A DNA stretch of 64,000 nt from Rebecca billardiae RCC1528. Its lineage: Eukaryota; Protista; Haptophyta. Where the stretch lies: positions 2,108,001 to 2,172,000 of the forward strand of contig OZ251227.1 of NCBI GenBank assembly GCA_965240325.2, read 5' to 3'. The position numbers were made by a program, and so were the translations under genes. Each line of letters opens with the position of its first letter. Within the stretch, counting starts at the first letter, position 1. Shown in pieces: positions 6,875-64,000 of the stretch. The notes beneath the pieces were generated by a model that was given only the letters and a program-made list of their open reading frames with translations, was not told where the DNA came from and did no database searches.

Positions 6875-7341
6875 CGGCCGTGAGCAGGGAGGACGGTGAG
6901 AGATCGAGCCTACTACTATCGTAAATATGTACTATATACTACTACTTCTACTAGCTACTACTACGACTACTACTGTATCTTATAGAAGTCGATATATAGT
7001 ATATATTCAGCCGATATATGGCACATATGCTGCGTGCTAGTAACGGTAGTATAGCAGGGAGATTGGCGGCGACCGTGCCGCGCCGCGGGCGGCACAGCGA
7101 GCGGGCCAAGCGCGGGCAAGCGGGCGGGGCCGACGGCCGTGTCCAACCCAGCACTCGACAAGGCGGCGCCGGTCGCCTCGCCAGGAGGTTGAGCTTGCTT
7201 GGTGTTGTCCGGCTTCCTCAGCTCATCATGACATCATCACTCTGAAGGCAAAGGACCATCCTGAAGGTCTTGTTGTTGTTGGCGCCTCGCGACTCGCTGC
7301 GACGCTGCCAGTCGCTGGAGAGCTGGGAATCATTCAGCACG

Positions 7342-8511
7342 ATGGGCTCCACGATGGCGTTGCGACGCCAACCGCTCAAGCGAGTTTTGGCCTGGCCGCT
7401 CCTGGCGGCGCTCGTCAGGGCGGGGCTCCCGCCCGTGTACAAAGCATACCCATCGCCGCAGATGCTGCCGATCCGTCGCGAGTGGTGGGTCACCATCGAC
7501 CCCGCCAACCGCACCCTCAACGCGCTCAACCACTGCTGCAACAACTCCAAGATGTACCGGCCGTGCGCGACCGCGGAGCAGCTCGCCGAGTTCCCGATGA
7601 AGCGCTTCGTCGGGCCGAGCGGGCGGATACGGAACGACGCGCCCGCCCGCCTGCGCGCGCACCTCGCGCATCGGCGCGTGTTGCTGCTCGGCGACTCGAT
7701 CACGCAGGAGTGGTACGAGTCTCTCGTGTGCTACACCGGCCTCGGACCCTTTGACGGCTACCTGCCGCGCGCGCCCACGGACAGGACGGGGCCGCACGCG
7801 GAGATCGCGCGCTGGTGCGGGCGCATCCGGCAGATCTTGGGCACGGTGCCGATCCACATCCGCACCAACGACCTCGGCATGCACATCACGCCCGGCGACG
7901 CGGGCGGGCGCGCGGGCAGCGGCCTCATCTACCTCAACCTTCCGGCGCTCAACGTGGCCAAGGTGGCGAAGACGATGCCCGCGATGATGCGGCTCGCGAG
8001 CGAGGAGCGGGTTGACGTCATCGTTGTCGACCCGGCGATGAACCACCTGTACCCCAACCGGCTCACCCAGGCCCTCCGCATGATCCCGGAGCTGTGCGCC
8101 GAGCTCGCGCCGAGCGGCATGCACTGCGCGATGCGCGAGCCGACGCCTCAGCACTTCATCTACCCGTCCGTGCCGCAGTCGTACAACTGGGGCACGTTCC
8201 TCCGGCGGCACTTCGAGGGCACGTGCAAGCCGTTCGACGGCCCCGAGTACGACACCTCCGTCGCCGGCTTCAAGCGCGACATGGTGCGCAGGCTGCACGG
8301 CAACGTGACGCTGTACGAGGTGTTTGACGCTCTTGTGCCGGTGCCCTTCCACCCCGGCCGGCCCGACGAGCGCTTCTACACGAAGCAGCGCTCGTACGAC
8401 TGCCTGCACCTCATGACGGACACGGAGGTGTGGGAGCCGCTGCACCTGCAGCTGCTCGACCACCTCGACAAGCTCTTCGGCCCGCCGCCGCCGATGCCAA
8501 GCAGTGCCTGA
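7342..8511 (+). CDS. SGNH/PC-esterase (TBL/Cas1p-like) O-acyltransferase or esterase
   Basis: N-terminal hydrophobic anchor, LLGDSITQEWYESLVC (GDS motif), C-terminal YDCLH (DxxH). Confidence 0.75.
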   Translation: MGSTMALRRQPLKRVLAWPLLAALVRAGLPPVYKAYPSPQMLPIRREWWVTIDPANRTLNALNHCCNNSKMYRPCATAEQLAEFPMKRFVGPSGRIRNDAPARLRAHLAHRRVLLLGDSITQEWYESLVCYTGLGPFDGYLPRAPTDRTGPHAEIARWCGRIRQILGTVPIHIRTNDLGMHITPGDAGGRAGSGLIYLNLPALNVAKVAKTMPAMMRLASEERVDVIVVDPAMNHLYPNRLTQALRMIPELCAELAPSGMHCAMREPTPQHFIYPSVPQSYNWGTFLRRHFEGTCKPFDGPEYDTSVAGFKRDMVRRLHGNVTLYEVFDALVPVPFHPGRPDERFYTKQRSYDCLHLMTDTEVWEPLHLQLLDHLDKLFGPPPPMPSSA

Positions 8512-8703
8512 GCAGTGGCGGGCAGAGGCTTCGTAGCAGTTCGAGTACGGTGAGACTTGAGTCAAGCGCCCGCGGGCGTCGGCAGTCACGTTTGCTGACG
8601 TTATACTAGTAGTACGTATACTATACACGTAGTCGTACTACATTTAGAACTCGTCAGAGATGAGCAGGGTGCACCGCGCCCCCCCATCTACTCATCATCA
8701 TCA

Positions 8704-11700
8704 TCACTGCGCCGCCGCACTCAAACTGACACCGCGGCGGCTGCTGCTGCTGAGATTGCTCGCAGCCATCGATGGAGAAAGCGCGAGAGTGTCGGAGAGT
8801 GGGCGCCCCTCGCTGAGCCGCGCGTCCGCGACGCTCACCGCCTTGCTGAACACTGAGCGCGCGCGCGGCGTGCGCGAGGGCCTCCGGCTGCTGGCGCTGC
8901 CCGAGCCGCCCGCCCGGCTGCGTGCGGTCGACTGCGGCGAGAGCGCGCCCAGCCACGCGTCGCTGTCTTCGCTGTCCTCCTCCTCCTCGGCCGAGCCGCC
9001 GCCCCAGGCGCTTGCCCTGCTCCGCCCGAACGCCTTTGAGAGCTCGGCGCTGCCGATGGCGCCGAACGCGTCGGCGCCGAGGGCCGCGCGTGGCGGCGCG
9101 CGCGCGGGCACGCCAGGCTCAACGCCCGCGGCGGCGGCGCCGAGCGCGGGCCTCACGAGCGACAGCCAGGCTCCCGCCGCGCCGACGGGCGGCGCGGTCG
9201 GGTGGCCCTGGATTGCGCCCGACGCGTCCGCCGTCGCGGCGAGCAGCGCGTCGCGCTGCATGCGCCCGAACTTGGTGAGCGCGCGCAGCTGCCGTGTCAG
9301 CGTCTCGTACGCGAGCGCAAAGCGCCACGCGCGGAACGCGGCGCGCGCGCGCGCTCGCTCCTGCTGCTTGGACGCGAGGACGAACGCTCGCCACACGCGC
9401 GACTGCTCGGCGCGCAGCGCGCGCACCGCGTCGCGCTGCTCCGCCGAGCGCCGCGTCGCGCGGCCCGGCGCGGCCGCGAACAGCGCGCTGCCCTGCTCGG
9501 CACGCAGCTGGATCTCAGCACCGCGCGGCGCGGAGCTGATGGTCGCGGCGCGCGCGCGCGGCGCACTCGGCTCCTTGCTCAGAGCGGCGTGCAGCGCGCG
9601 CGCATACGCGGCCAGGTCAGCGGCGAGCTCGCCGTTGAGAGTGGAGGCGCGCGCGTCGGCGGCGGCGCGCGGAACGGCCTGGACGCCGCGTGCGGCCGCC
9701 GTGGCGTGGCGCCACGCCGCGAGCAGCGCGCGCAGGTGGCGGAAGTGGCGCGCGTGCGCGCGCGCCGCCGCGCGCGCCGAGGCGTCCACGGCCGCAAGCA
9801 CGCGCGCGCGCGCCGCCTCGCGCGCCGCACTCGGCGTGTCAACCACCGCACCCGCCGGTGCACGCTCGGCGTGAGCTGGCACGCCGCCGCGCGCGCCGCC
9901 CGGTGCGGCGGCGGCCGCCCAACCGCCGCGTGCCGCTGCGGCGCGGGGCCCGCGCGCCGGGTCGCTCAGCCGGCGTACGCGCGCGGCCTCAGCCGCCTCC
10001 ACACTCGCCGCCAGCCGCGGCGAGCGCCCAGCAAAGGCGGTGGCGGCGGCGACCGCCGCGCGGCAGCTGGCAAGACCTGCGGTAAGCACACCGGCGCGCG
10101 CGCTGCGCTCCGCCTGGGCGTCGATGTCCGACTCGGCCGCGAGACCTGCGGCGCGCCGTGCCCGCTCCCGCGCCGCCGGGCTGCCGCCGTCGCTGTCCTC
10201 GCTGTCAAAGACTGCGCCGGCCGCGCGCGCCGCGCGCCGCGCCGCGCCGCGTGGGCTGTCGGGCGGCGACGCCGCGGCCGCGGCCGCGGGCGCTGCCACG
10301 GCCGCGGCCGCCGGCGGTGGCACGCTCGGCGCCGGCTGTGGCACAGGGCCAGCCGGCGGCCCGCTCGGCTCCGTCGGCGCCGCGCCCGCGCTCGCGCGCG
10401 CCGAGACAGCGCCCCAGCGGCCGCGCGGCGGCCCGTGAGCATCGCCGACGCACGCGCGGCGCAGCTCGGCATGCTGGGCCACCTGCTCAAACGCTGCGGC
10501 CGCGCGCAGCACGTGTCCGCCACCGCTGGTGGGGAGGAGGGCCTCCGGCTGCAGCTGGGGCGGGGCGCCCACCGCCCTGCGCAGCCGCGGCGCGCTCGTC
10601 GCGCGCGCGCGCTCCGCCGCCGCCGCCGGCGCGGCCGCCCCGGCGGCCTCAGCCCCGGCTGCCGCGGCCGCCGGGGCGGGCGCGGCGCGGGGCGCCGGCG
10701 GCGCTGTCGGCCTGAGCGGCTCACTGCCGCTCGCTCCGCGCTCGTGCGCGCGCGCCGACTCGGCGGCCGCGGTGGAGATCGCGCCGGCGAGCCCCGCCGC
10801 GAGTGCCTCCAAGTTGGAGGCCGGGCGGGATTGCGCGCGCGGCGCGCTGCTCGCGCCCACGCCGCCGCCGTCGGCGCGCGCGCGCCGCTCGCGCGCGCGC
10901 CGCTCGCGCGCGCGCCGCGCTGCACGGCCCCACGCGTGCAAGGTGCGTGACGAGAGGCGAACACGTGCCTCGCTCTCGCGCGCGCGCGCCACGGCCTCCG
11001 CGGCGCGCACGCTGCGCGCGTGCGCCGCGCGCGCCTTCGCCTCCGCCTCGCCCTCGCGCACGCGCAGCCGCCTCAGCATCCTCTCTTCCGCGTCGCTGTC
11101 GGCGCGCGCGGTGCGGCTAGCGACCGCCTTTTCCGCGTCCGCCTCCGCGCGCTCGATCAGGTGCCGCGCCTCCGCCTGGAGCCGGAGGCGCTCGAGGGTG
11201 AGCTCGGCGTCGAGCGCGTCGACCGTGCGCGCGAGCTCGGCGCAGCGCTGACGCCACTCGTCCGCCTCGCGCAGGTACGTGCCCGGTGCCGACGTGGCCT
11301 GGGTGCCGCGTTCACGCGCCGCTGTGGGCGTGGCGGCGGCTGCGGGGCGCGGCGGCCGCGGCGGCGGCTGCGGCGGCGTGAGTGCCGATGCGCGCTCGAG
11401 CGCTTCGGCGGCTCGGCGTGCCGCATCGGCGAGGAGCTCGGTGTGCACCACCTGCTGCGCACGCACGTCTCGCGCCGCGTAGTCGTCGCCAAGTACCGCC
11501 TCTGCGAGCCGCACGCGCCGGCTGCGCAGCGGCCACTCCGCCTCGTCCACCGCGGTCCAGCCGTGGGGCGCGTCGGGCGCGAGGTGGTCAGGCGAGCGAG
11601 AGCGATATGGTCTCGGCCGCGCCCCGTCGTCCAGCGCGCCCGCCGCGCGTGCGGCACCGGACTGCCGCGGCGATCGCTCGGCGGTCAGCAATTGCTCTGT

Positions 11701-11889
11701 CGAGAGCACGTGCTCGGCGAGGAGCCGCGCGCGCTGACGCCAAGCGCTCATGTCGTGCCGCATGCGATCGCGAGCGAGGGCGAGCGTCACTGCAGCCCAC
11801 GCGCGCAGGATGAGCCGTGCGCACGCGCGAGCGCGCCACGACGACCCCTCGCCCGCCATGCACCAGTTCGCCACGGCCAGCAGCGCCAT
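8704..11889 (-). CDS. Large Ala/Arg-rich coiled-coil protein with spaced Trp motifs (Sfi1/POC5-like centrin-binding candidate)
   Basis: Open frame of more than 1000 codons; repeated LRAWA, LHAWGR, LAAWRH, VWRAF, FRAWRF; start codon uncertain. Confidence 0.55.
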   Translation of the reverse strand: MALLAVANWCMAGEGSSWRARACARLILRAWAAVTLALARDRMRHDMSAWRQRARLLAEHVLSTEQLLTAERSPRQSGAARAAGALDDGARPRPYRSRSPDHLAPDAPHGWTAVDEAEWPLRSRRVRLAEAVLGDDYAARDVRAQQVVHTELLADAARRAAEALERASALTPPQPPPRPPRPAAAATPTAARERGTQATSAPGTYLREADEWRQRCAELARTVDALDAELTLERLRLQAEARHLIERAEADAEKAVASRTARADSDAEERMLRRLRVREGEAEAKARAAHARSVRAAEAVARARESEARVRLSSRTLHAWGRAARRARERRARERRARADGGGVGASSAPRAQSRPASNLEALAAGLAGAISTAAAESARAHERGASGSEPLRPTAPPAPRAAPAPAAAAAGAEAAGAAAPAAAAERARATSAPRLRRAVGAPPQLQPEALLPTSGGGHVLRAAAAFEQVAQHAELRRACVGDAHGPPRGRWGAVSARASAGAAPTEPSGPPAGPVPQPAPSVPPPAAAAVAAPAAAAAASPPDSPRGAARRAARAAGAVFDSEDSDGGSPAARERARRAAGLAAESDIDAQAERSARAGVLTAGLASCRAAVAAATAFAGRSPRLAASVEAAEAARVRRLSDPARGPRAAAARGGWAAAAAPGGARGGVPAHAERAPAGAVVDTPSAAREAARARVLAAVDASARAAARAHARHFRHLRALLAAWRHATAAARGVQAVPRAAADARASTLNGELAADLAAYARALHAALSKEPSAPRARAATISSAPRGAEIQLRAEQGSALFAAAPGRATRRSAEQRDAVRALRAEQSRVWRAFVLASKQQERARARAAFRAWRFALAYETLTRQLRALTKFGRMQRDALLAATADASGAIQGHPTAPPVGAAGAWLSLVRPALGAAAAGVEPGVPARAPPRAALGADAFGAIGSAELSKAFGRSRASAWGGGSAEEEEDSEDSDAWLGALSPQSTARSRAGGSGSASSRRPSRTPRARSVFSKAVSVADARLSEGRPLSDTLALSPSMAASNLSSSSRRGVSLSAAAQ

Positions 11890-12004
11890 CTTGCGGGTTG
11901 CTGCCGTTTCAAGATGCTTAGAATTTAGATGCGCGTCTTGCGAGATCGGGATCTCCTCCGGCCGAGGGCGTTGAGTCAAGGGTGCGCTGGGGGCGCGAAG
12001 TCCC

Positions 12005-14583
12005 ATGAGGAGCCCCCCGGCTCGCGATGCCGGCTCGCCCAGCCGGCCGCGGGTGCCGGACGACATCAGCGTGCACTCGTCGCTGCCCTCAGCCGACTCG
12101 GACGACGATGGCCACTCCATCGACGGGCTCGACCCGCGCCGACTCCACCGCATGCGCCGAGAGGCGAGCCGCGCGCTGCAGGGGCCGATCGAGAGCGTGC
12201 CCAGCGAGCAGCGCGCCGTGCCGGTGCGCGAGCTCTTCCGGGACCTGGGCGAGGTCTTCGCGCGACGCGCACCGACGCCGGATCAGCTCGCGATCGCGCA
12301 GCCGGTCGAGGCGTACGACTACTTCTGCTCGCACGCGTGGGCGGAGGGGCGGCAGTACAAGCTTGCTGCGATGCTGTACCATTTCGCGCTGCCGCCTGCG
12401 CTCGTCGCCATGGTGCTGGCGTCGCACCTGGCAGCGGCGCTGTGGGCAGCGGGTGTGCTCCCGACCATGCTCACCGACGTGTACTGGCCCGACATGACCG
12501 ACCAGCCCGTCGCCGTGGGCTTCTACTGCCAGCTGAGCGCCCTGGTCGCCTTTGTGGTGACGCTCTGCCTCTGGCCGGCCGCGCACGAGCTCGCCGCGTG
12601 GTTCGGCGTGGTGGCGCCGATCAACGTCTTCATGGACAAGGTGCGCGCGCATGCGCGGCGCGCGCGCGCACGCGTGACAGCCCATCGTGCTCGCCACGCC
12701 CCTCACGCCCCACTCGTCGCGCGCGCGCGCGCCCGCGCCCCTCGCTCCCCTCCGCCCGGCTCGCCACCGTGTCGGGCGCGCGCTCGGCACAGCTGTGCAT
12801 CGACCAGCTGGACGTGCGGCGCAAGGTGAAGGGGATCGACCAGATCGGCGGGTTCCTGGCGAACTCGGAGCGCATGCTCGTCCTGTGGTCCCCCCACTTC
12901 TTCGAGCGGCTGTGGTGCTGCTTCGAGGTCGCCGTCTTTCTCACGCCGCCGCCGATGGCCGCGCCGCCGCCCAAGCGGTCGGGGGCCCGGGGGGTGCGCG
13001 CTGCGCCGAGCTCGGCGCCGGCCACGCCGAAGGAGCTGGGCGCGGCCGGCGCGGATGAGCGGGCGCACGGACACCGGCTCGCCGCGGACGCGGCCGCCGA
13101 GCCGCGTGGGCCGCTCGGCGTGCCCGCGCCGTCCTCGACTCTGCCGCCCGCTGGCGGCGGCGGCGGCGCGGGCGCTCGGCCGGCCGAGCTGCCGCCCGTG
13201 GCGCGGCTGCCTCCGATCACGCTGCCGGCGCCGCCTGCGCCGCCGCGGGAGGAGGAGGAGGCCCCCACGGCGCAGCTCAGCGACTCGGTCCCCGCCTCCC
13301 CCGCCGGCTCGCGCGCGACGACGCCGCGCGGCTCCTCGCTCGCGTCCCCGCCCACGCTGGAAGGGCCGCGCGCACGCGCACGCGCGCCCAAGCCCGCCCT
13401 CGCGCCGTGGGTGGTCCGACGGCGGAGCGGCGGCAGCGAGAGCGGCCGGCTGGGGCGCGCGCCGCACGCGCCCGAGCGGCAGCTCTCGCTCGTGCCGACG
13501 CAGCTCGCGAGCGCCTCGCTCATCGCCATCCCGTGCCTCTTCCTGGGCATGCACGTCGTGCTGTGGGCCGACTATGTCGACCTGGGCGGCCGGGCGGCGC
13601 CGGGGCTTCAGCTGCTCGCGCCCGCCCTTGGCGTCACCACGGCCGGTGCGATGGTCTCCAAGTTCGTGCGCACGTACGCGCACGACCGCTCGCAGCTCGA
13701 CGCGCAGCTCCGCGCGTTCCGCTTCGACGCCGCGTTCTGCACCGTGCCGCACGACCGCGCCCTTCTCCGCGCCGTGATTGGCCACCTGTACTCGCCAGGC
13801 GGCGGCGACGAGGCGGTGGGGGTGGCGAGGTTTGAGGCGGCGGTGCGCACGCGGCTGCGGCGGCACGTCGTGAGCTCGATCGGCGCCAAGTCGACGCTGC
13901 CGCTCGCGGCGACGCTCGCCGTGTGCTGCGCCGCGCACTGCTTCTACCTCGACCTCGTCGCCTCGCGCGCCGCGCTCCCCGCGCAGCTGTTCCCGTCGGC
14001 CGCCGCCAAGGCGCTCGACGTCCTCGCGGTGTGCTGCTACACGCTCGCCCAGTCGGTCGGAGCGATCCCGTTTGCGGGCGCGGGGATGGTGGCGCTCTCG
14101 CAGGCGATCCCGCGGCAGGAGACGCGGCGCGCCGAGCTCGCGGCGCACGCGCTGAACGTCGCGTTCGCGCTCCTCGTCGTCGTCGGCAACTACGTGCTGA
14201 GCGCGGCGGCCTTCTACCTCCTGCCGCCGGCCGCGTCGATCCCGCTCAATCTCGGGCTGGCCGTGTCGCTGTTTGTGGGCGCGACGCGGCGGCTGGACGA
14301 GCGGGGCGGGCTCGCGCTGCGCCTGCTCGCCGCGGCGGTCCGCCGCGTCGCGTGCTGCGCGACGCTGGACCTCAGGTACGAGTCGGCGACCGAGCTCGGC
14401 CGCGAGCACTCGTACACGGTCACGGAGGGCGGCGACGAGCCGGCGGCGGCGACGTCTCCGTGGTCGACGGACGACGGCAGAGGGTCGCCGGGCGGCGGCG
14501 ACCGGCCCGCGCTCGACGGCGGCGAGCGCGCGGATAGCGGCACCCCGCCCGCCTATGCGGCCAACGGCGGCTTTGGTAGGTGA
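12005..14583 (+). CDS. Membrane protein with a TIR-like domain interrupted by TM helices; exons 12005-12640, 12793-14583
   Basis: YDYFCSHAW, two TMs, VFMDK|LCIDQ across a GT-AG intron, MLVLWSPHFFERLWCCFE, then about 6 further TMs. Confidence 0.8.
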
Positions 14584-15297
14584 TCCCGTCGCGCCCGGTC
14601 CACTACCCACCTCTCGCAGCCGTAACGGCTACGCCGCACCTCGTGCCCGTGGCCACTAACTACTCACAGTACGGGCCCAGGGGGAGACTCAGTGGCTGGG
14701 CTGTGTCACACCGCATGATTCAGACTTTCAGTGATGAATACCTTATTCCTTTACTGAGTACAGAAAGGTCCGATCCATCTCACCCTTCAAGCCGTGGGTC
14801 ACTCAAGTCGGCGGCCCGCGCGCGGGGCCCACCGGCGCGCCGAGGCGCCGCACGCAGGCGTCACTAGCCCGGCGGGTTCGGGCTGCGCGGTCAGTCGTGC
14901 GACCGCCGTCCCTGGACGCACGGCTTCCGCACTCGCAGTCACAGCAGTCAGTGGCTAGGTGACACTCAGTGTTCCACGCTGTAAATCCGCGCAGAACCGA
15001 GACAGCCAACCGTGTCGGGCAGCACCGTCGGACTATACGGTCGCGCGGTTCACGGGCCGAATGTGCGGCGGCGCCTGTCAACAGCGGGGCGATCATCGAC
15101 CGACATCGCTAGCGAGGTGATCAGGGCTAGCAACAACCTTCTCTCGGACCAAGTCACACCATTTGGCGACCTCGCCGCCGCTCAATGCGGCACCCGTCCA
15201 GAGGCACGATGTGCCGCACTCTGGCCAGCCCCACCATTCCCGCCTCGGCGATCGACACAGGTAGGACGGCGCAGGTCTCCTGGACCCATTCTATGAT

Positions 15298-16290
15298 TTA
15301 ACGACACAGGTAGGACGACGCGGGTCTCCTGATTCCCCGGCCCAGGTTTGATGATCGGTCAAAACAGCGGGGGCCTGGCGGCCTTGTCCCGGTGGGGCTG
15401 GTCGAACACAGCGCGTCTAGGACGCGACGGAGAAGCTGGTTAGGGCCGGCAGACCCGACGACGATGGGACGAGTTGGCCGTTCAGCGCTGACTAACGGGA
15501 TCATCCGGTGGCGCGCCGCAGTCGCGCGTGCGATTAAGCCAGCGGCGCGGCAGCGCCGTGAGCGCGGCACTTCTGCAAGGCCCACCGAGGCGCACGGCGA
15601 GGCGCGCGTCGATGCAGTCGTCGCTGCGCACGGCCGCTCGGGCACGACGGCGCGGCAACAGCACGCACCGCAGATGGCCCACCGGTTTGCAGGTGCGGGG
15701 CGAGCGGCGCAGGGCACAACCGACTGCACGGCGTACTCCTGCAGCCGTCGCTGAGCACGGCCCGTCGGGCACGACGTGGTACGAGCGGCTCGCGTCGGTG
15801 TGCATGTTGTGTTGTGCAGCTCGCGCCGGCGGGCACGCACCTCCGCGATGGCGCCGCGAGCCGCGGGCGGCGCGGGTGACGGCTCGAAGGCCGCGCCCGT
15901 TGATGACGAGCCAGGGAGAGTAATACTGTCGGGCAAGTCGGCGAGTGGGTGGCTTATAGTAGGCTTGTTGTACGAGCTTCTCCATGAGGCCGTTCGTGCA
16001 CGTCATCTGATGCGGTTGCGGCTGCTTGATCGCCGCCACGTGCCGCTGGATCTCCGCCAGATCGGCGCAGTTCCTCGCGACGCCGACGATGGCATCTGGC
16101 GCTGGGTTCGGCGGAGGCCCGCGGACACGGCTGATCCTCGTCGCACACGTGTGTGCGAGCGCGAGTGCCGGCAGCGTCGTCGAGCCACGCCGGCTGAGCG
16201 CCATTCTGCGTGTCGCGCGCGGCCTTCGCCGCCTGCAGCAGCGCGCTGAGCTCGTTCGTCATACTAAATCGTGTGTGCCGAGCGCACGCG
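15298..16290 (-). pseudogene. Degenerate coding-like remnant, identity unknown
   Basis: Protein-like stretches switch frames (MTNELSALLQAAKAARD..., PDAIVGVARNCADLAEIQRHVAAIKQP...); lies in the TE block. Confidence 0.25.
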
Positions 16291-16543
16291 GCGCGGCGGC
16301 GAAAGCACTCGTCGCGGTTCCTCAAGGTGGGAGCGGATGATCGTAGAAAAGCGTCCTATGTGGGAATCGCAACGATATCCCTATGGGGCGCGCTCAAAAA
16401 GGTAACGACATGCGTTCTCGATTCCCGAGGCGTGCCTAATCAAAAAACGTTTGAGGCCCCATTGTTCGTATTCCTACTCCGGTATTACTTTCCCCATCAG
16501 TATTGGACACCCAATTAAAGGGGGTCGTCCAGCTGGGTCTGAG

Positions 16544-17641
16544 CAAGGGTAGTAAGGGTGAGCAACTCCGCTGGCGACAGCCGCGAAAGCCCTCTGTTTG
16601 CCGCGAGCGGAGCGGAGCGAGTGCTAACAGCGGCGGAGGGCGCTGAGGCCGCGCACGGCGTGAGGCGCGGCGTCGGCCGAGTCGGTCCGCGGAGGATGCG
16701 CGGCGCTCGGCCCGCTGCGCAGCGGCAGTGCGCCTCACTTTGCCCCGAGCGCCGTCCGCTGCGTCGCCTCCTTCCCGCCTTGGAGCAGCACGCATGTGCG
16801 CGCCGCCACCTTGAAGGCGGCACGGGCTTGCTCAGACGACCGCGCGCGCGTGGCGCGCGACTTGGTCGGCTGCGCGCGCGCGCCGCCGCGGTGCAAGGTA
16901 GCGCCACCACATGCGCGCGCCGTGCCCGCGCGAGCCTTTGCTCACGGCCATCTCATGAGCGTAGTGCTCGCTTGTCTGCTTGCTCTCACGAATGATTTGC
17001 TGTGCCTCACGCTGGCACTCGTCCGGTCGATCAGCGAGGTGTTGAGTGACATTGGATACCCAGGACGAAGGCCTAGTCTTGTCTATTCCTTCTCAGCACG
17101 AATGCAAGTGGACGCTAAGGCTCCGCATCGATGGTACCAACACTCACGCCGCTGTCTTTTCCAGCTTCCCGTCAGTCCGCAAGTCGGATGCCAAGCAGCA
17201 TTCGACATGTGTGTGAGGTCGCACTCAGGTCCGCGCACACGCTCTCGCGCTGGCACGGCGCGCGCATGCGGCGGCGCTACCTTGCACCGCGGCGGCGCGC
17301 GCGCGCAGCCGACCAAGTCGCGCGCCACACGCGCGCGGTCGTCTGAGCAAGCCCGTGCCGCCTTCGAGGTGGCGGCGCGCACATGCGTGCTGCTCCAAGG
17401 CGGGAAGGAGGCGACGCGGAGGACGGCGCTCGGGGCAAAGTGAGGCGCACTGCCGCTGCGCAGCGGGCCGAGCGCCGCGCATCCTCCGCGGACCGACTCG
17501 GCCGACGCCGCGCCTCACGCCGTGCGCGGCCTCAGCGCCCTCCGCCGCTGATAGCACTCGCTCCGCTCCGCTCGCGGCAAACAGAGGGCTGCCGACCTTC
17601 GCGGCTGTCGCCAGCGGAGTTGCTCACCCTTACTACCCTTG
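16544..17641. mobile_element. Non-autonomous fold-back element A (P-superfamily-like termini)
   Basis: Arms about 16544-16935 and 17244-17641 are reverse complements; termini CAAGGGTAGTAAGGG...CCCTTACTACCCTTG; 7-bp TSD gtctgag at 16537-16543 and 17642-17648. Confidence 0.92.
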
Positions 17642-57437: not shown

Positions 57438-59604
57438 ATGGCCCGCGGTGCAGGGCGGAGCGCGTAGCGTGGAGCCCCGCCGGGGGCCCTCACTACGTTG
57501 TCAAAAAGCAGATCTTTTGATCAAAGAAAAGGGGACGGGGGACGATTTTGAGGGCTGTTGGAGGGTGAGTTTTCGCTTTTTCGAGGGGTACATTCGCCCA
57601 TTGCTCTGCATTAGCAAGACGCGATTGACGAAATAGCCGCGCCCGGGCCATTTCGCATATGTCGATGGACGGACGTGCATTTGTCAGTATATCTGGGTGA
57701 ACGAATCTGCGATTTGTTGTAAATCTTCATAGCATATTGCCGAATAGGACGAGGACCCAGCGCGTGCGCTGGAGGTCCTGGGCTCCTGGCAAAAAGTCTT
57801 CGTCAAGTACTCAACTTTACTAACGACGAACCTTTATTGCGCGCTGCCAAATTACTCAACTTTACACCTGAATGACCCCAGTGGGCGGAAATGGCCATAT
57901 CTCCCGGAGATCGGGAGTACTCACACGTGTGAGTCATGTTTCGTCCTTTTTTCCGAGACGTTGATTGGTCAAACGCTCAGCATTCCATGTCCACGATTCC
58001 ATATCGACACAACACAACTCCTACCAACCTGTGTACTAAAAACCTTGGGTTAGCTGCACAACGACCAATCAGCGCGCAGCGAGCGGAGAGACTCGAAAAC
58101 CGAGAATCACTCACGCATTTACTATGATGTTTGCTCTTCGCCCATGCCAACTTTGCTATTGACAAAAACGCAGCGGCTTGGTTACGACCCATAGAAAGAC
58201 GACCACCAATCAGCACACAGCAAACGAGACAACCTTCACTTTCGAGCGGGCGAAAGGAGCTTTGGCCTTCAACCCGCAGGCATATGCGTCTGGCGCTGGC
58301 CTTCGTTCGGCGCCCGAGCATCATCGGTAGACGTGTGGCGTGCCGGCCCACGGTCCGCCGCCCTCGCCCTGCTCATCTTCATCGTCTCCTCATCCTCCTC
58401 GTCGTCCGCGCCGCCGCCGTGCGCCAGCGCCTCCGCCAGCGCGGCGCCGCGCAGGTGCTCGCGGAACAGCACGACGGCGCCAGAGCGCGCCGGCCGGCGT
58501 GGCGCCGGCGGGCGGGCGCGCGGCGCTCAGCGCGGTGCCGAGCAGCCCTCCGAGCGCGCGCAGCTGCGCACCCGCCGGCAGCTCGAGCAGCGCCGCGTGG
58601 CACGCGCCCGCGCCGGCGGCGCCGAGCTCCGCGCACAGCACGGACAGCCCTCGTGCCCACGCCGCCGCGCGCCCGCCCGCGCCCGCGGCGTGCAGCGCGC
58701 CGAGCGCGGCGCCGAGCGCGGCGCGCGCTGCGGACGTGTCGGCGGCGCACAGCGCACCCGCCGCCGCGCCCAGTGCACACGCGGCACACGCGAGCAGCTT
58801 GAGCACGCTCGCGCATGCCAACTGCGAGTGCGGAGGCGCTGGGCGCCGAGCTGGCGAAGCGCGGCGCCGAGCTCGACGCGCTGCGCGACGCGGAGACGGA
58901 CGCGCTGGGCGCGCGTGGCGCCCTCGTCGCGACGCCCCGTGCAGCAGCTCGAGCAGCCAGCTGTGGAGTAGACGGCCGTCGAGGCGATCGGCGCCGGGCG
59001 CCAGCGCGCACGGGCTCAGCCCGTGCCGCTGGCTCGGGCCGCCGCAGCCGTCTTCGAGGCCGACGCGGCGGAGGAGGCGGCGGGCGAGCACGGCGGCGCG
59101 GTGGAGCAGGCGCGCACGCGCGGCGGCAGGCGCGACGCGCCGCTCGCCTCGTTCCACCCCGAGCTCCGCTCGGTCTCGGTGTGCGGCTGCCGGCAGCGCA
59201 GGCCGGGGCAGCACTGCGCGGCGCGCGCTCTCGCTCCGTCTGCCGGCACGAGGTGCGCCGGCTGAGTGAGCGACCAGCGGCCCATCGTCGAGCGCATGGC
59301 GCCGCGCGAGCACGTCAAGCAGACTGTGCGCCCGCACGCGCGCACGCGCTGGCCCGCGCCGCGCGGCGCCTATCGCCCTGCCTGCGCGCGCGCGCCGCCC
59401 CGCGGCGGCCGCTTCCCCGCGCGGCGGCCCGCCGGCGACAGTCCTCGGCCCGCCGGCCCGGTGGGCGGTAACTGAGTTGTGGCGGTGGCAGCTCCGAGGC
59501 AAACGAACTGTTACACATGTCCGACTGAGACAGCAGCCGACGGAGGGTGCACCGCGGGCCCCTAACTGCGTTGGTTCTACGGAAGGACCGCGGAACGCGG
59601 TCAT
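57438..59604 (+). mobile_element. Non-autonomous Helentron/Replitron-like element, copy 2 (head-to-tail, different interior)
   Basis: Shares the ~240-bp 5' end and ~66-bp 3' end (59539-59604) with copy 1; interior holds unrelated GC-rich coding-like fragments. Confidence 0.75.
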
Positions 59605-60932
59605 ATATCATCATCAATATGCTCAGCATGCGCACCCAAGATATGATGATGTTGGGAGCTGGTACCAAAAATGAGCGAGCAGTTCTATTTGGATTGGTCG
59701 TTACCATCAGCAGAAAGGACCTGCAGGATCTTGTATATGGCAGTTGGAGGGAGAGGGCTCTTGACCACCAGCGGCAAGTCACCTATCTTATTGCCGCCGG
59801 ACACCCTCGGTTATAGCTCCGCTATAACGCCACTACATATATATATATTCCTTTCAAGCATATATATATAGTAGCAGCTTACTCGTCCTCGAAGTCGATC
59901 GACGAGCGGCGTGCGCGCGCGAGGCACGGCCACGGGCCACGCGAGCGCGCAAGCGCGGCTCTTCCTAGCAGCGGCATAGCCCTGTACGGCCAGATGTCCA
60001 CCTCGCCAGACCCCACTCGTCCCCATACACACAACACAGGCCCGTTCGTGACACGGCCAAAGCCTGTGTTGTGTGTATGGGACAACACATAACTGTATGT
60101 GCCGTGGGCACAAACGGGCCAAAGCGGCCGGCTGTGGCACAAGGGCCCTCGTCGAGGAGGTCTACGCCGGTTGCGGGCGCACGTGCCGATGTGCGCAGCG
60201 CCGTCTGACAGCGATGTTGCATTCGCTGTGACGATGAGACTCTTCTGGACCCTGGTGATTCGCTCTTGTGATTAATGTGGACGTGCCGCGTGCGAGGCTT
60301 GGAGCTCCTTGAAGACTTGAATCTGACTGAGGGGCGGCAGCGACTGAATTCAGATCGGCAGTTCCGATGACCAGCAGTTAGCAGTACGTCATGCCCCCGT
60401 GCCTCTTCGGTCGCTCTCACTCGGCCAGCGAGGGCCCTACCCCTGTCGCCGCGGTCGCTCCTAGCTGACTCGGCCCTGCTGCAATGACTGGCCCGCCTGC
60501 AGCACCACGCCCCGCGCTCAGCCGCCGCGCTGTGGCCCGCACGCGCCGGCGCAAGACGAGAAGGTCCGGTCATTGCAGCTGGACCGAGTCAGCTAGGAGC
60601 GGATCCGCACCAGCCCGCGCCGTCGCCTGCTGCAGCTGGCGAATCACGTCATGGTCGCGCGCGCGTGTGGCCAGGGCGACGCTGCGCGCATGCGCCTGCC
60701 GCGCCTGCCGCTTCATCCACTGGCAACCGCACGCGCGGCCGGAAGCAGCTCGACAGGCACGCGGTGTGGCGCGTGCGCCTGCCGCAATACGCGAGTCCGC
60801 ATCGCGGCGCCCTCCCGCGCTCGACAGCGACCGAGCCGGAGGGTGACTGGTTGGTGCTTCTGGCAGTGGGGTGCACACGTATTTGTTGATGCGATCGTCA
60901 ACTTGAGTGGCGCCGAGCCGGTTGAGCACCCG

Positions 60933-63900
60933 ATGGTGCCCGGCGAGCCGCGGGCACGGGCGAAGCCGACGGCGGCCGAGCTGATGGATCAGGCGATGAC
61001 GGCATGGGAGTCCACCACGGACAGGATCCGTGTGACCCTCTCCTCCACCTCGGACGCCGCCAAGCCGCTCTGGGCGAAGGGCCTCTTCCAGCCGCAGCGG
61101 CCGCAGCCAGTCGCGAACGCGCTCGTGCACCGGCCGGTGGTGATCAAGGCGCATCCGCTCGACGTCCCGGCGCTGCGCGAAGACAACGAGATCCTGGCCT
61201 CGTACGTGGACGACCTGCCGGTGGGCATGGGCATCAAGGGCGGCATCGCGCGCAAGCTGGTGAAATGGCTGAGCGGCAAGGAGGAGCCCGCAGGCTCGTA
61301 CGACATCGACGTGATCGTGCTGGTCGACGAGGCGGAGCTCACGCCCGAGCGCAGTCTCGAGCTGCGCGGGCAGGTCACGGGCACGCGCTGCGGCGACCTC
61401 GTGCTCGAGGCGCAGGACGTCGAGATCCACCCGAAGGAGGAGCTCTATGAGTAGTACGCGCATGCGCACGCGCCGGCCGCGCGCCCTCGCCCTCGCGTGC
61501 GCGCGCGCCCTCGCGTGCGCGCGCGCGCGCGCGCGACGCGAGCGGCCGACGGCGGCGCGGTCCCGGCGGCGCGGCGTACCCCCCCTCCGCGCGCAGCTTC
61601 ATCACGCGCGACGTGACGCAGAACGAGGTGCTGCTCCTCAAGCGCGCGCCGCACGACGCGCTGCTGCTCTTCACGGAGGCGTGCGAGCGCGACTGTGCAG
61701 ACGAGCGCGCGACGCCCTCGGTGCACACGCTCTCGGCCGGGCTCAACCTCGTGTGGGACGTGGACGAGTTCGGGCGGCCGTTCGTCTCCGAGCACATCTT
61801 CACGCGCACGCTCATCCGCTACCTCAAGGGCCACGCGACGCAGTACGGCGTCGACGACGACACGTGGGCGCACTTCCGCGCGGACGGGCTGTCTCCGATC
61901 GCGCTGTACAAGATCCTGCGCCACTTCCACGACGACGACGCGCAGTACAACGCGGCGGTGGACCACCTCGTGCGGCAGGGCCTGCTGCACCGCTGGCTGC
62001 TGCGCTCGCTCGGCGGGCCCAACCAGCTGTGGGGCCAGCTGCTGCAGGCGATCAACACGGCGTGCGCGCGGTACGGCGGTCGGCTCAAGATGTCCGAGCT
62101 CGATCCCGAGGCCGTCGAGCAGTGGATCGCGAAGAAGAAGGCGCAGCTCGGGCAGAAGCTCGTGCACAACCGCACGCGCGGCCGGCGCATCGGCTTCGTG
62201 CCGCTCGAGGAGTCGGTGTACACGCTCGGCCTCGTCACCGTCCCGCCCGAGCTGCACGAGTACGTGGAGCGCGGCGCGACGTTCGGCGCGGCGCGCTCGG
62301 CCGCGGCCGCGGCGCGCCCGGCGCGCTCGGCGTTCGAGCGCATGCTCGCGCGCGCGCGCTCGGCGTCGAGCGCGCGCGGCGGCGCGGCCACGTCGACGGG
62401 CGCGCCTCACGACGCGGCCGGCGGCGCGCCGATCAGCCTGAGCACCCCGCTGCTCGGGCAGCAGAGCGGCAGCGGCAGGTCAGCGAGCGCGGCGAGTATC
62501 GACCCCGAGTCGGAGCCGGCCGAGGCGGCGATCCGCCGGGCCGTGCACTCTGAGTCGTCGGGGCGTGTGTCCGAGGACACGATGGCGCGCAGTCACGAGC
62601 TCGCGCTCACGGGCTCCCCCCCGCACGAGGCGTACATGGACAAGCTCGACACCGGCCTCTTCCAGGCCGCGGCGGCGCACGAAGCGGACGCGGCGCACGG
62701 CCGGCCGGCGGGCGACGCGCAGAACGACCCGGCGGACGAGATGGTGGTGCGCTCGTACGCGCGCGCGCACCTCTCGCACGCCGAGCTGCTGAGCTTCGTG
62801 CTCGGCGTGATCTGGCCGTTCCGCCGCGTCATGTGCGCCGCGTACCTCTGCCTCTTCGCCGCGCTCGGCCTGCGGCTGCTCACCTCAAAGGCGGAGGGCG
62901 ACGCGCTCAACCTGCTGCAGGCGGGCGACGCCGCGGGCTTCTGGCAGCAGTTCAACACGGTCGCGGCGGTGTGGACGGGCTCGGTGGTGCTCGAGCTCGT
63001 GGGGAACGTGGTGATGCAGCTCTTCGCGCGGCGCTCGATGCAGCACCTCTTCACCCGGCTCTTCAACCACCTGATCCACCAGGACGCCGACTTCTTCCAC
63101 GCGCTCACGCTCGGTGAGATCTGCTCGAGATGCTCGGGGGATAGCCTCACGCTGAAGGGCATCATCAGCTCGACGCTCTTCGAGGTGGTGGCGGGCGGGG
63201 TGCAGGCGCTCGCGGCGATGGTGCTGCTGATGGTCGAGGCGCGCGCGCTCTTCCGGCACAAGCCGAGCATGGTGCTCGCCGCGCCGATCGCGCTCGGCCT
63301 CGAGGTCGCGTACTCGGTGCTGTTCGGCGCGCTGTTCGCCCACCCTCTCAACCACGTCGCTCGCTCGTCGCTCGGCCGGATGTACGGCTTCCTGTTCGAC
63401 ACGTTCTCGCAGCTGCCGACGGTGCAGGCGCTGGGGATGATGCGCCGCCAGGCGGCGGACTACTGCCGCTTCGTCGAGCACTACTGGGTGCACCGGCTGT
63501 ACCTCGACGTGTGGCTCTCCTCCGAGCGCTTCTTCTCGTCGGGCGTGGGCGTGGTGCTGGTGCTCGCATTCATCGCCACGCTCGCCGATGCGTACGAGGC
63601 GCGCGCGGTCGTGGGGATGGGCACGATCTACGCGGTGCTGCGCTACCTGCACGCGATGCAGCGCGGGATCAAGACGCTCTCCGACGCGAGCGCGCGCATC
63701 TCCGCCTCGCTCGGCTCGGTCGAGCGCCTCGTCCAGATGCACAACGCGGGCAAGTTCGTCTCCCCGCGGCTGGGCGCCTCGGAGCCGCAGCCGGCGCCGC
63801 GCGCCTCGGGCTCGTCGAGCGGACACGGCGAGCCCTCGCCGCTCGCGCCGCCGGCGGCGGCCGAGCTGCGCTCGATCACCGGCGGCGTGCGGCTGGTGAG

Positions 63901-64000
63901 CTGCCACTTCTGCTTCCGGCAGAAGTCCGACGTCACCGTGCTGCACGCCGTCTCCCTCCAGCTGATGCCCGGCGCGATCGTCGCGCTCACCGGCCACTCT
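60933..64000 (+). CDS. Nucleotidyltransferase-like domain fused to an ABC exporter (TMD + NBD), truncated at the 3' end by the window; intron 61454-61596
   Basis: KGGIARK...YDIDVIV...EY|FITRDVTQNEV; the frame stays open from 61597 to the window end through the ABC TMD (LFNHLIHQDADFF...GEICSRCSGD, LPTVQALG) and the NBD start (VLHAVSLQLMPGAIVALTGHS). Confidence 0.85.

Follow-up and report, generated by a model that had tools for sequence, protein, structure and literature searches.

At the 3' end of the window, the whole 64,000-nucleotide stretch of Rebecca billardiae DNA analyzed here, the first-pass annotation had noticed a nucleotidyltransferase (NTase) resembling CCA-adding enzymes and poly(A) polymerases that appeared to be fused to an ABC exporter. 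This raises the question of whether the fusion is real and, if so, what a protein of this kind might do. Both building blocks are known folds. Their fusion is very probably genuine, because the two parts meet within a 1019-codon exon of uniform codon bias, a Tetraselmis transcript encodes the same arrangement, and uninterrupted open reading frames (ORFs) with it are found elsewhere. The overall best explanation, to which we assign a probability of about 0.5, is an NTase–ABC membrane protein that handles nucleic-acid-related cargo.

Gene structure and coding evidence

The locus is one genuine gene with two exons, present as a single copy in the R. billardiae genome, and its spliced product is 1193 amino acids long. 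The features of the gene are listed below in window coordinates; positions beyond 64000 are window-equivalent and lie in the adjoining downstream DNA.

60933..61453, + strand: exon 1, with the start codon, a poorly conserved N-terminus of 33 residues and the first half of the NTase-like domain (translation, codon bias, tblastn with P0001)
61065..62275, + strand: class II-like NTase domain ("X domain", about residues 45–400, about 355 residues), split by the intron
61230..61310, + strand: motif A, comprising GIKGGIARK at 61230–61256 and DID at 61302–61310, 15 residues past the K (family conservation)
61413..61427, + strand: QDVEI strand with a candidate third catalytic carboxylate, D162 or E164 (conservation; beta strand in the model)
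61454..61596, + strand: GC-repeat-rich GT-AG intron of 143 nt in which a C-rich tract precedes the AG (sequence; junction agrees ungapped with P0001)
61597..64000, + strand: exon 2, truncated by the end of the window and extending to 64655–64657 (open frame)
61604..61627, + strand: motif B-like TRDVTQNE, directly past the splice junction (family conservation)
62276..62749, + strand: low-complexity linker rich in Ala, Ser, Gly and Arg, about 160 residues, in frame and free of stops (third-position GC 0.96)
62786..63640, + strand: ABCB-type (type IV) transmembrane domain with six predicted helices (PF00664, hydropathy)
63941..64000, + strand: start of the ATP-binding domain, with Walker A GHSGSGKST from 63992; the domain runs to about 64650 (PF00005)

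Left unspliced, the frame that opens at the ATG at 60933 closes at a TAG at 61452–61454. Removal of the intron, with GT at 61454–61455 and AG at 61595–61596, joins TA to C as a Tyr codon, and the product then reads ...EELYEYFITRDVTQNEV. The frame of 61598 stays open up to the end of the window, and its stop is reached at 64655–64657. The single frame claimed by the first-pass annotation was thereby reproduced, and its account of why a list of ORFs had missed the second exon, namely that the exon runs off the window without a stop, is correct. The motifs, linker, ABCB-type membrane domain and start of Walker A that it described are all present where it had placed them.

Splicing and fusion are called from an orthologous transcript together with codon statistics. 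The transcript protein P0001 of Tetraselmis sp. GSL018 is 61% identical to the spliced product (E 8e-86), continues without a gap over the splice junction, where it reads ...SLRDYFITRDVTQNEV, and spans junction, linker and transporter start as one protein; in tblastn it aligns with 61032–61445 of exon 1. Third-position GC is 0.88–0.98 across exon 1, exon 2, linker and membrane domain (0.88–0.95 for exon 1 alone), as against 0.60–0.76 upstream of 60933, where no codon bias is found. The intron at 61454–61596 has no codon periodicity. An organelle transit peptide starting from an ATG at 60651 was considered and dropped, since codon bias is absent there.

Long open frames arise easily in DNA of 70% GC, and the fusion might on that account be an artefact of the gene model, either of two adjacent genes or of an unspliced intron with exon 1 ending at the TAG at 61452. 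Such a reading is very improbable. The 1019-codon frame of exon 2 keeps a third-position GC of 0.96–0.98 throughout, linker included, and the NTase domain spans the intron so that its second half shares an exon with the transporter. The Tetraselmis transcript encodes the same fusion, as do many ORFs from other sources that run without interruption. Downstream of the gene lie a weak Sir2-like ORF and a leucine-rich-repeat (LRR) gene, both unrelated.

The nucleotidyltransferase domain

An alignment-based structure model of the N-terminal domain has a pLDDT of 96.1 and a pTM of 0.92; it was used in place of a single-sequence AlphaFold model, which was discarded at a pLDDT of 40.6. The model contains a Pol-beta NTase head followed by a helical neck, and the top 30 Foldseek matches are all class II CCA-type enzymes, with aminoglycoside NTases among the weak matches. 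Neighbors in the ESM Atlas are unnamed clusters from CPR (candidate-phyla-radiation) bacteria first and PolyA_pol clusters next. As modeled, the domain has the class II head-plus-neck fold of CCA-adding enzyme, bacterial poly(A) polymerase and TENT5, which bears out the class II Pol-beta assignment. TssK and JetA, returned with low recognition by a protein-atlas feature search, are regarded as noise, as the fold search disagrees.

Within 62 aligned relatives, the best conserved columns are GG..R, DxD, D.E and RD.T.N, and they include the motifs A and B of the first-pass annotation. The glycines of motif A are kept in 39/43 and 37/44 relatives, its arginine in 43/45, and its two aspartates in 37/43 and 39/44. 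In the QDVEI segment, a beta strand in the model, the counts are 35/39 for the aspartate and 34/39 for the glutamate. Motif B retains R in 40/44, D in 35/44, T in 34/45 and N in 38/47 relatives, and the position of the first R in RRD is usually T or S. The spacing from GG to DxD is longer than in CCA enzymes. The EDxxR of motif D, which selects the nucleotide, is not recognizable in the family. There are two candidate counterparts: an R...R..KG helix (R 37/48, R 36/51, K 38/51, G 43/47) and a poorly conserved HDDD loop, which hhalign pairs, at a probability of 1%, with DDPLR in the CCA enzyme of this genome.

At the level of sequence profiles, no match to PF01743 (PolyA_pol; membership cut-off 23 bits) or PF12627 was obtained at E ≤ 1 for any of the 62 family members, and the family has no match in NCBIfam or PADLOC. 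The family profile found nothing among PDB sequences, and searches of them with the two exon pieces gave only a chance DUF262 match at E 0.036. Alignment of the family with the head of the genome's CCA enzyme by hhalign reached a probability of 1%, which is no profile-level link; the two true PolyA_pol genes of this genome lie elsewhere, on C7 and C15. In profile terms the domain falls outside Pfam PolyA_pol and forms an uncurated family of its own. The description as CCA/poly(A)-polymerase-like holds for the fold and for motifs A and B and fails for the PF01743 profile and for the tRNA-binding body and tail, neither of which is recognizable in the domain.

The domain is probably catalytically active, an expectation we hold with moderate confidence, because GG..R, DxD, D.E and RD.T.N are the most conserved positions in relatives. 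The most likely reaction would be addition of a ribonucleotide, donated by an NTP, to an acceptor of the 3'-OH type, given that the GG..R helix cap, the DxD pair, an acidic third strand and the ribose motif RD.T.N are all kept. The domain is mostly acidic (pI 5.1–6.7 in 10 of 13 members). Such a charge does not favor RNA binding in general, and the acceptor could also be a small molecule or a protein.

The linker and ABC module

The linker shows no homology to the one that P0001 carries at the equivalent position. The membrane domain that follows scores 36.9 bits against ABC_membrane PF00664 (E 4e-9; cut-off 28), and with the downstream DNA added, the ATP-binding domain scores 57–61 bits against ABC_tran PF00005 (E 3e-15; cut-off 25). 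The nearest solved relatives of the ABC part are ABCB1, ABCB4, ABCB10 and TAP (E 1e-34 to 1e-15), and identity to any unfused ABC protein among 5.8 billion sequences is at most 25%.

The ATP-binding domain is non-canonical. Walker A (GHSGSGKST) and Walker B (ILLVDE, with the catalytic Glu) are intact, and ATP is therefore probably bound. The LSGGQ signature is replaced by LGEGL. The Q-loop is SLST where P-glycoprotein reads VSQEP and has no Gln, and the H-loop is CW where P-glycoprotein reads AH and has no His. The closest orthologue, P0140 (47% identity), conserves both Walker motifs and departs from the canonical signature and H-loop in the same way, so that this form of the domain appears to be under selection. 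Other family members have a more degenerate ATP-binding domain, and several are without even Walker A, which makes ATP-driven export doubtful. Of the ABC exporter originally annotated, the ABCB-type membrane domain and Walker A are confirmed; the non-canonical ATP-binding domain makes "exporter" a fold assignment with a putative activity.

Distribution and domain architecture of the family

The NTase family comprises 118 representatives at E ≤ 1e-3. The domain stands alone in CPR bacteria, an archaeal contig and a chytrid, and fusions with an ABC module occur in green algae and in ichthyosporeans, which are close relatives of animals. Named taxa with family members are Tetraselmis, Chlorella sp. 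A99, Chromosphaera and Creolimax. On metagenomic eukaryotic contigs, the fusions are encoded as uninterrupted single ORFs of 1200–1760 amino acids. The search for a like architecture in algae and for stand-alone bacterial homologues, as proposed in the first-pass annotation, returned both. With members in green algae, ichthyosporeans, a chytrid and CPR bacteria and on an archaeal contig, the family must be old or mobile; it is also under selection.

The N-terminus of fused relatives is often made up of a signal peptide, a nuclease domain of the RNase T2 (PF00445) or Endonuclease I (PF04231) type and one transmembrane helix. A single helix lies directly ahead of the NTase domain in 12 of 13 long members, and canonical RNase T2 catalytic motifs are present in P0019, P0027 and P0029. 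The R. billardiae protein has no nuclease and no N-terminal anchor. No RNase T2 similarity was found within the window. The + strand has no hydrophobic segment from 58500 to 61040, and no upstream exon for a membrane helix was found. Separate RNase T2 genes are encoded elsewhere in the genome.

Around the stand-alone homologues, the prokaryotic and archaeal neighborhoods contain no transporter and no clear nuclease linkage; a faint PD-(D/E)XK gene, an alpha/beta hydrolase and a second Pol-beta NTase occur there and are uninformative. Some picoeukaryote contigs carry paralogue pairs side by side, which suggests obligate heterodimers of non-canonical halves. The R. billardiae protein probably works as a homodimer, as it has no close paralogue.

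Proposed function and alternatives

In the preferred reading, the protein consists of a cytosolic NTase domain, a disordered linker, a six-helix ABCB-type membrane domain and an ATP-binding domain. Because relatives are ordered as signal peptide, nuclease, one membrane helix and NTase, the nuclease is predicted to face the far side and the NTase and ATP-binding domains the cytosol. At the mouth of the ABC module on the cytosolic side, the NTase could bind, tag or extend its substrate (RNA, oligonucleotide or nucleotide). The ABC module would then move the cargo or product to a vacuolar or lysosomal lumen or to the cell exterior, where fused or separately encoded nucleases would degrade it. The RNase T2 and Endonuclease I domains of relatives, which are predicted to be luminal, shift the likely cargo toward nucleic acid or nucleotides. 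TAPL, a transporter of peptides into lysosomes, is a parallel for such a mechanism; we know of no precedent for polyanion transport through a type IV ABC fold. This particular choice of cargo and direction is tentative. A bolder version, in which the family would be a machine for nucleic-acid disposal or transfer that captures or tags RNA or oligonucleotide 3' ends, passes them through the ABC module and destroys them on the far side with the attached RNase T2 or Endonuclease I, is speculative and unlikely.

The same parts can be assembled differently. The idea put first in the first-pass annotation, which also proposed modification of cargo ahead of export, was that a nucleotide-derived product is made and exported. 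In such a scheme the NTase would make a nucleotide, a signal in the form of an oligonucleotide, or a small molecule that has been nucleotidylated, the ABC module would export it, and in relatives the outer nuclease could trim or inactivate it. Conserved catalytic motifs and an exporter-type membrane fold fit this scheme, an acidic domain without tRNA-binding body or tail suits a non-RNA acceptor, and the aminoglycoside NTases among the weak fold matches are Pol-beta enzymes that nucleotidylate small molecules; on balance we regard it as improbable. Traffic could also run inward, with an outer nuclease digesting external or vacuolar RNA or DNA, the ABC fold importing the products and the NTase-like domain binding or processing them, in which case the R. 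billardiae protein would be a nuclease-less version that partners a separately encoded RNase T2. Both RNase T2 and Endonuclease I are well known as scavenging enzymes that are secreted or periplasmic, and in relatives they sit behind signal peptides and ahead of a single membrane helix; the genome has the separate RNase T2 genes that this version calls for. Some type IV-fold ABC proteins, such as IrtAB and ABCD4, do import, and IrtAB shows that an importing exporter fold can carry an enzyme domain at its cytosolic N-terminus. However, an NTase takes NTP donors and would have no obvious role for 3'-NMP or oligonucleotide products, the module is without a known substrate-binding protein or import signature, and the ATP-binding domain is degenerate; we regard uptake as improbable.

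In a further reading, the ABC-like module would be no pump but a membrane scaffold, channel or receptor with a degenerate ATP-binding domain, and the NTase would serve as effector or NTP-sensing regulator, for example in a sensor that couples outer-nuclease events to cytosolic nucleotidyl transfer. In its favor, signature, Q-loop and H-loop are lost family-wide, and Walker A in several members, while the NTase motifs stay. The side-by-side paralogues of picoeukaryotes, with their suggestion of heterodimers of non-canonical halves, fit this as well. Yet in the R. billardiae protein and P0140 both Walker motifs and the catalytic Glu are maintained by selection, and the membrane domain still exceeds the ABC_membrane cut-off; we regard a module without transport as unlikely.

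Comparison with known systems

The closest structural counterparts of the N-terminal domain are the class II NTases of PF01743, that is, the CCA-, A- and CC-adding enzymes and E. coli poly(A) polymerase I, with which it has the head and neck fold and motifs A and B in common. It differs from them in having no detectable profile similarity, no recognizable EDxxR, no PF12627 body or tail and no HD domain. Further differences are the longer GG-to-DxD spacing, extra beta hairpins after motif B, the acidic character and the tether to a membrane transporter. The TENT5/FAM46 non-canonical poly(A) polymerases score below CCA enzymes in structure, at 8–12% identity; they are animal-specific, soluble or ER-associated, and have no transporter fusion.

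The ABC module has the membrane-then-ATP-binding domain order of ABCB half transporters (ABCB10, TAP1/2, TAPL/ABCB9, MsbA and the halves of P-glycoprotein), and both PF00664 and PF00005 are above their cut-offs. Unlike these, the R. billardiae protein has the LGEGL signature, no Q-loop Gln or H-loop His, and an N-terminal enzyme domain. A cytosolic N-terminal catalytic domain on a type IV ABC fold is likewise found in peptidase-containing ABC transporters (C39 peptidase, PF03412) and in IrtAB (siderophore-interaction domain). The likeness is one of analogy only, with the sequence relation limited to the ABC core and with a nucleotidyltransferase in place of a peptidase or reductase. By that analogy, processing and translocation of cargo may be coupled, as in enzyme-plus-exporter fusions. 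The far-side nuclease of relatives is absent from both of these systems.

Novelty and significance

A literature search found no paper on the NTase–ABC architecture. Relative to the literature and family libraries searched, three things are new: the NTase family, for which Pfam, NCBIfam and PADLOC hold no model; its fusion to an ABC module; and the three-part nuclease–NTase–ABC architecture of relatives. The last of these points to an undescribed handling of nucleic acids or nucleotides over a membrane.

Provided that the NTase is active and its action is coupled to that of the membrane module, the family would be a new class of enzyme-coupled ABC systems and possibly a new route for RNA or nucleotide traffic over membranes, with relevance to vacuolar RNA turnover, algal phosphate scavenging and extracellular nucleotide signaling. 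Should the disposal or transfer scheme hold, there would be a protein-encoded route for nucleic acid over a eukaryotic membrane (vacuolar, lysosomal or plasma) unrelated to RNA uptake of the SIDT or LAMP2C type. For structural work, the NTase domain is a compact, confidently modeled new branch of class II NTases, and the ABC module is a natural case of an ATP-binding domain that has Walker A and B and is without signature and H-loop.

Gene Structure and Orthologue Support

The nucleotidyltransferase (NTase)-ABC fusion gene is a real gene, and the stretch reads as the first-pass annotation described it in exons, intron, frame, and motifs.

Features of the fusion gene
60933 (ATG) to 61452-61454 (TAG), +, exon 1 frame in translation
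61454-61455 (GT) to 61595-61596 (AG), +, 143-nt intron, C-rich tract before AG
61230-61256, +, GIKGGIARK, NTase domain
61302-61310, +, DID, NTase domain
61413-61427, +, QDVEI, NTase domain
61604-61627, +, TRDVTQNE, NTase domain
From 63992, +, Walker A GHSGSGKST, ATP-binding domain

Excision of the 143-nt intron joins TA and C into a Tyr codon, after which the frame of 61598 is open through the window end. The window corresponds to G000:C10:2108001-2172000; with downstream DNA added (L003, a stretch starting at window position 60000), the stop falls at window-equivalent 64655-64657 and the spliced product has 1193 aa. In this genome of roughly 70% GC, third-position GC tells coding from non-coding DNA: it is 0.60-0.76 upstream of 60933, 0.88-0.95 in exon 1, 0.98 in the NTase part of exon 2, 0.96 in the low-complexity linker, and 0.98 in the membrane domain, and by this measure codon periodicity is absent from the intron. 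This places the start near 60933 and puts translation of the linker in frame with both flanking domains. That a gene-model artefact takes the place of a fusion gene is very improbable.

Among 5.8 billion proteins, a region-restricted search yields a single relative, P0001, a Tetraselmis sp. GSL018 transcript protein (E 8e-86, 61% identity). At the junction, P0001 reads ...DVEVRARDSLRDYFITRDVTQNEV and the spliced window product ...DVEIHPKEELYEYFITRDVTQNEV, with equal length across it, and in P0001 the sequence goes on to a linker of its own and then the same ABC membrane domain. In tblastn, P0001 matches the window at 61032-61445 and 61598-63730 only. Transcript support for the predicted splice and fusion is by orthology, via this Tetraselmis protein.

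The Nucleotidyltransferase Domain

Pfam matches neither exon piece of the N-terminal domain nor the orthologue's domain, P0001:540-895, and PDB sequences give no match. Searched exhaustively with HMMER, 1.84 billion cluster representatives include 118 relatives at E<=1e-3, 61 of these at E<=1e-10. AlphaFold on P0001:540-895 with a 62-row family alignment (A1) gives a confident model with pLDDT 96.1 and pTM 0.92. Every one of its best 30 Foldseek matches in the PDB is a class II CCA-, A-, or CC-adding enzyme, with TENT5 (FAM46 non-canonical poly(A) polymerases) next; its ESM Atlas neighbours are unnamed clusters from candidate-phyla-radiation (CPR) bacteria, then PolyA_pol clusters. The catalytic positions are exactly the best-conserved columns of A1.

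Catalytic positions (model numbering) and their conservation in A1
G58, 39/43
G59, 37/44
R62, 43/45
D79, 37/43
D81, 39/44
D116, 35/39
E118, 34/39
R132, 40/44
D133, 35/44
T135, 34/45
N137, 38/47

In the model these fall on strand-GG-helix, next strand, third strand, and following turn, the same succession as in motifs A and B of class II NTases. Together, the structural matches and the conserved positions show a predicted class II-like (Pol-beta-type) NTase fold with an apparently intact active site. The earlier assignment to CCA/poly(A)-polymerase-like NTases thus stands, as does its expectation that the DxD and RD motifs are conserved in homologues.

None of the 62 family members matches PF01743 (PolyA_pol) or PF12627 (RNA-binding body/tail) at E<=1, the family profile has no match among PDB sequences, and hhalign against the genome's own CCA enzyme gives a probability of 1%. 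NCBIfam and PADLOC hold no model for the family. The EDxxR nucleotide-selecting motif is not recognisable, the tRNA-binding body and tail of class II NTases are absent, and the domain is mostly acidic. Because the domain resembles class II NTases and TENT5 in fold and motifs but not in sequence profile or accessory domains, it is filed as a new family within the class II NTase fold class. Two canonical PolyA_pol genes lie elsewhere in the genome, at G000:C7:2637409-2637819 (L011) and G000:C15:483570-484159 (L012, L013), so the window domain adds to the housekeeping CCA/PAP enzymes and does not replace them.

The ABC Module

The ABCB-type membrane domain and Walker A of the first-pass annotation are upheld: PF00664 (ABC_membrane) and PF00005 (ABC_tran) both score above cut-offs, and hydropathy shows the usual helices. 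The best solved relatives are P-glycoprotein, ABCB4, ABCB10, Ste6, and TAP. Walker A and Walker B with its catalytic Glu (ILLVDE) are intact; in alignment to P-glycoprotein, the ABC signature is replaced by LGEGL, and the Q-loop Gln and H-loop His are absent. Domain content is thus that of an ABCB-type half transporter, but signature and H-loop are not. The NTase is tethered covalently to a divergent ABCB-type module, which supports the earlier structural interpretation of an NTase fused to an exporter-type module. The only close relative of the ABC half, in the closest orthologue P0140 (49% identity), has the same motif pattern; all other database matches are at <=25% identity, and in more distant family members Walker A too is gone. 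Genome-wide, neither half has a close paralogue, and the simplest expectation here is a homodimer whose two sites are both non-canonical.

Family Architecture and Distribution

By Pfam scans and a family-specific iterative search, all long members carry the same ABC-like module C-terminal of the NTase domain. N-terminal of it lies RNase T2 in seven (P0001, P0019, P0027, P0029, P0048, P0085, and probably P0003), with canonical catalytic motifs in P0019, P0027, and P0029, and Endonuclease I in one (P0049). A single hydrophobic helix directly precedes the NTase domain in 12/13 long members, and several begin with a signal peptide. The predicted topology implies that the nuclease would be outside or luminal and the NTase and ATP-binding domains cytosolic; such far-side nucleases recur in relatives.

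The search for this architecture and for stand-alone bacterial homologues proposed earlier finds both, the fusion in the Tetraselmis transcriptome, Chlorella sp. A99, and the ichthyosporeans Chromosphaera and Creolimax, and the stand-alone form in CPR bacteria, the chytrid Geranomyces, and a contig with archaeal Spt4/Rpb7 genes. The window protein is the minimal form, lacking nuclease and anchor helix; a search for an upstream exon able to supply either found none, and RNase T2 genes sit on other contigs of the genome.

Residues 1-540 of P0001 hold two RNase T2-like repeats. HGLWP and KHG are both present in the first; in the second the first catalytic His is gone (LGLW), and this repeat may be an inactive binding module. 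On L020, a metagenomic picoeukaryote-like contig, the nuclease-NTase-ABC paralogues P0003 (1661 aa, 6315-11300, +) and P0048 (1763 aa, 11410-16701, -) are arranged tail to tail with 110 bp between them, and P0019 has a similar paralogue alongside on L021 and L022. Such pairing hints at heterodimeric half transporters.

Possible Function

The family-wide nuclease association constrains the function of NTase-ABC proteins. The NTase probably transfers a ribonucleotide at the cytosolic face. In the tentatively preferred model (probability roughly 0.3), it would bind or tag RNA, oligonucleotide, or nucleotide cargo, which would then be passed outward and degraded by fused or separate nucleases. This model is preferred because three nucleic-acid-related parts are ordered cytosol-membrane-far side, and because in type IV ABC folds cargo normally moves away from the ATP-binding side. 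It is weakened chiefly by the degeneracy of the ATP-binding domains and by the acidic character of the NTase domain.

It is unlikely that the ABC-like module is a scaffold or sensor that does not pump, the NTase acting as its effector. That a small nucleotide product is made and exported is similarly doubtful. Uptake or salvage fed by nucleases is slightly less likely still. Peptidase-containing ABC exporters and IrtAB are enzyme-plus-exporter fusions like the window protein by analogy only. Full-text literature searches of incomplete coverage turned up no account of NTase-ABC or RNase T2-ABC proteins, which is absence of evidence only.

Genomic Neighbors

On three prokaryotic MAG contigs (L017:5953-9117, L018:5881-7588, L019:944-4103), an alpha/beta hydrolase (Hydrolase_4) follows the stand-alone homologue on the opposite strand. 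Next on L017 comes an ORF of 503 aa that matches Pol-beta NTase families (PF01909/PF18765), and L019 has an ORF of the same size at that position. With bins labelled Shapirobacteria, Gammaproteobacteria, and Desulfotomaculum, some of the binning may be wrong. On a Staskawiczbacteria contig, a gene with a faint PD-(D/E)XK nuclease match (L006:1210-1893) lies directly downstream of the stand-alone homologue, on the same strand after a 72-nt gap, and may echo the nuclease association of the eukaryotic fusions.

Past the window end lie a long ORF with a sub-threshold Sir2 match (L003:6426-8297, -) and a leucine-rich-repeat ORF (L003:8492-9529, +; LRR_6, E 5e-18), neither with an evident tie to the NTase-ABC finding. 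Two inverted repeats (60456-60601 and 60022-60081) lie in non-coding DNA immediately upstream of the gene, one with 39-nt arms, 90% complementary, and a 68-nt spacer, the other a perfect 20-nt pair with a 20-nt spacer; these could be transposon ends or hairpins.
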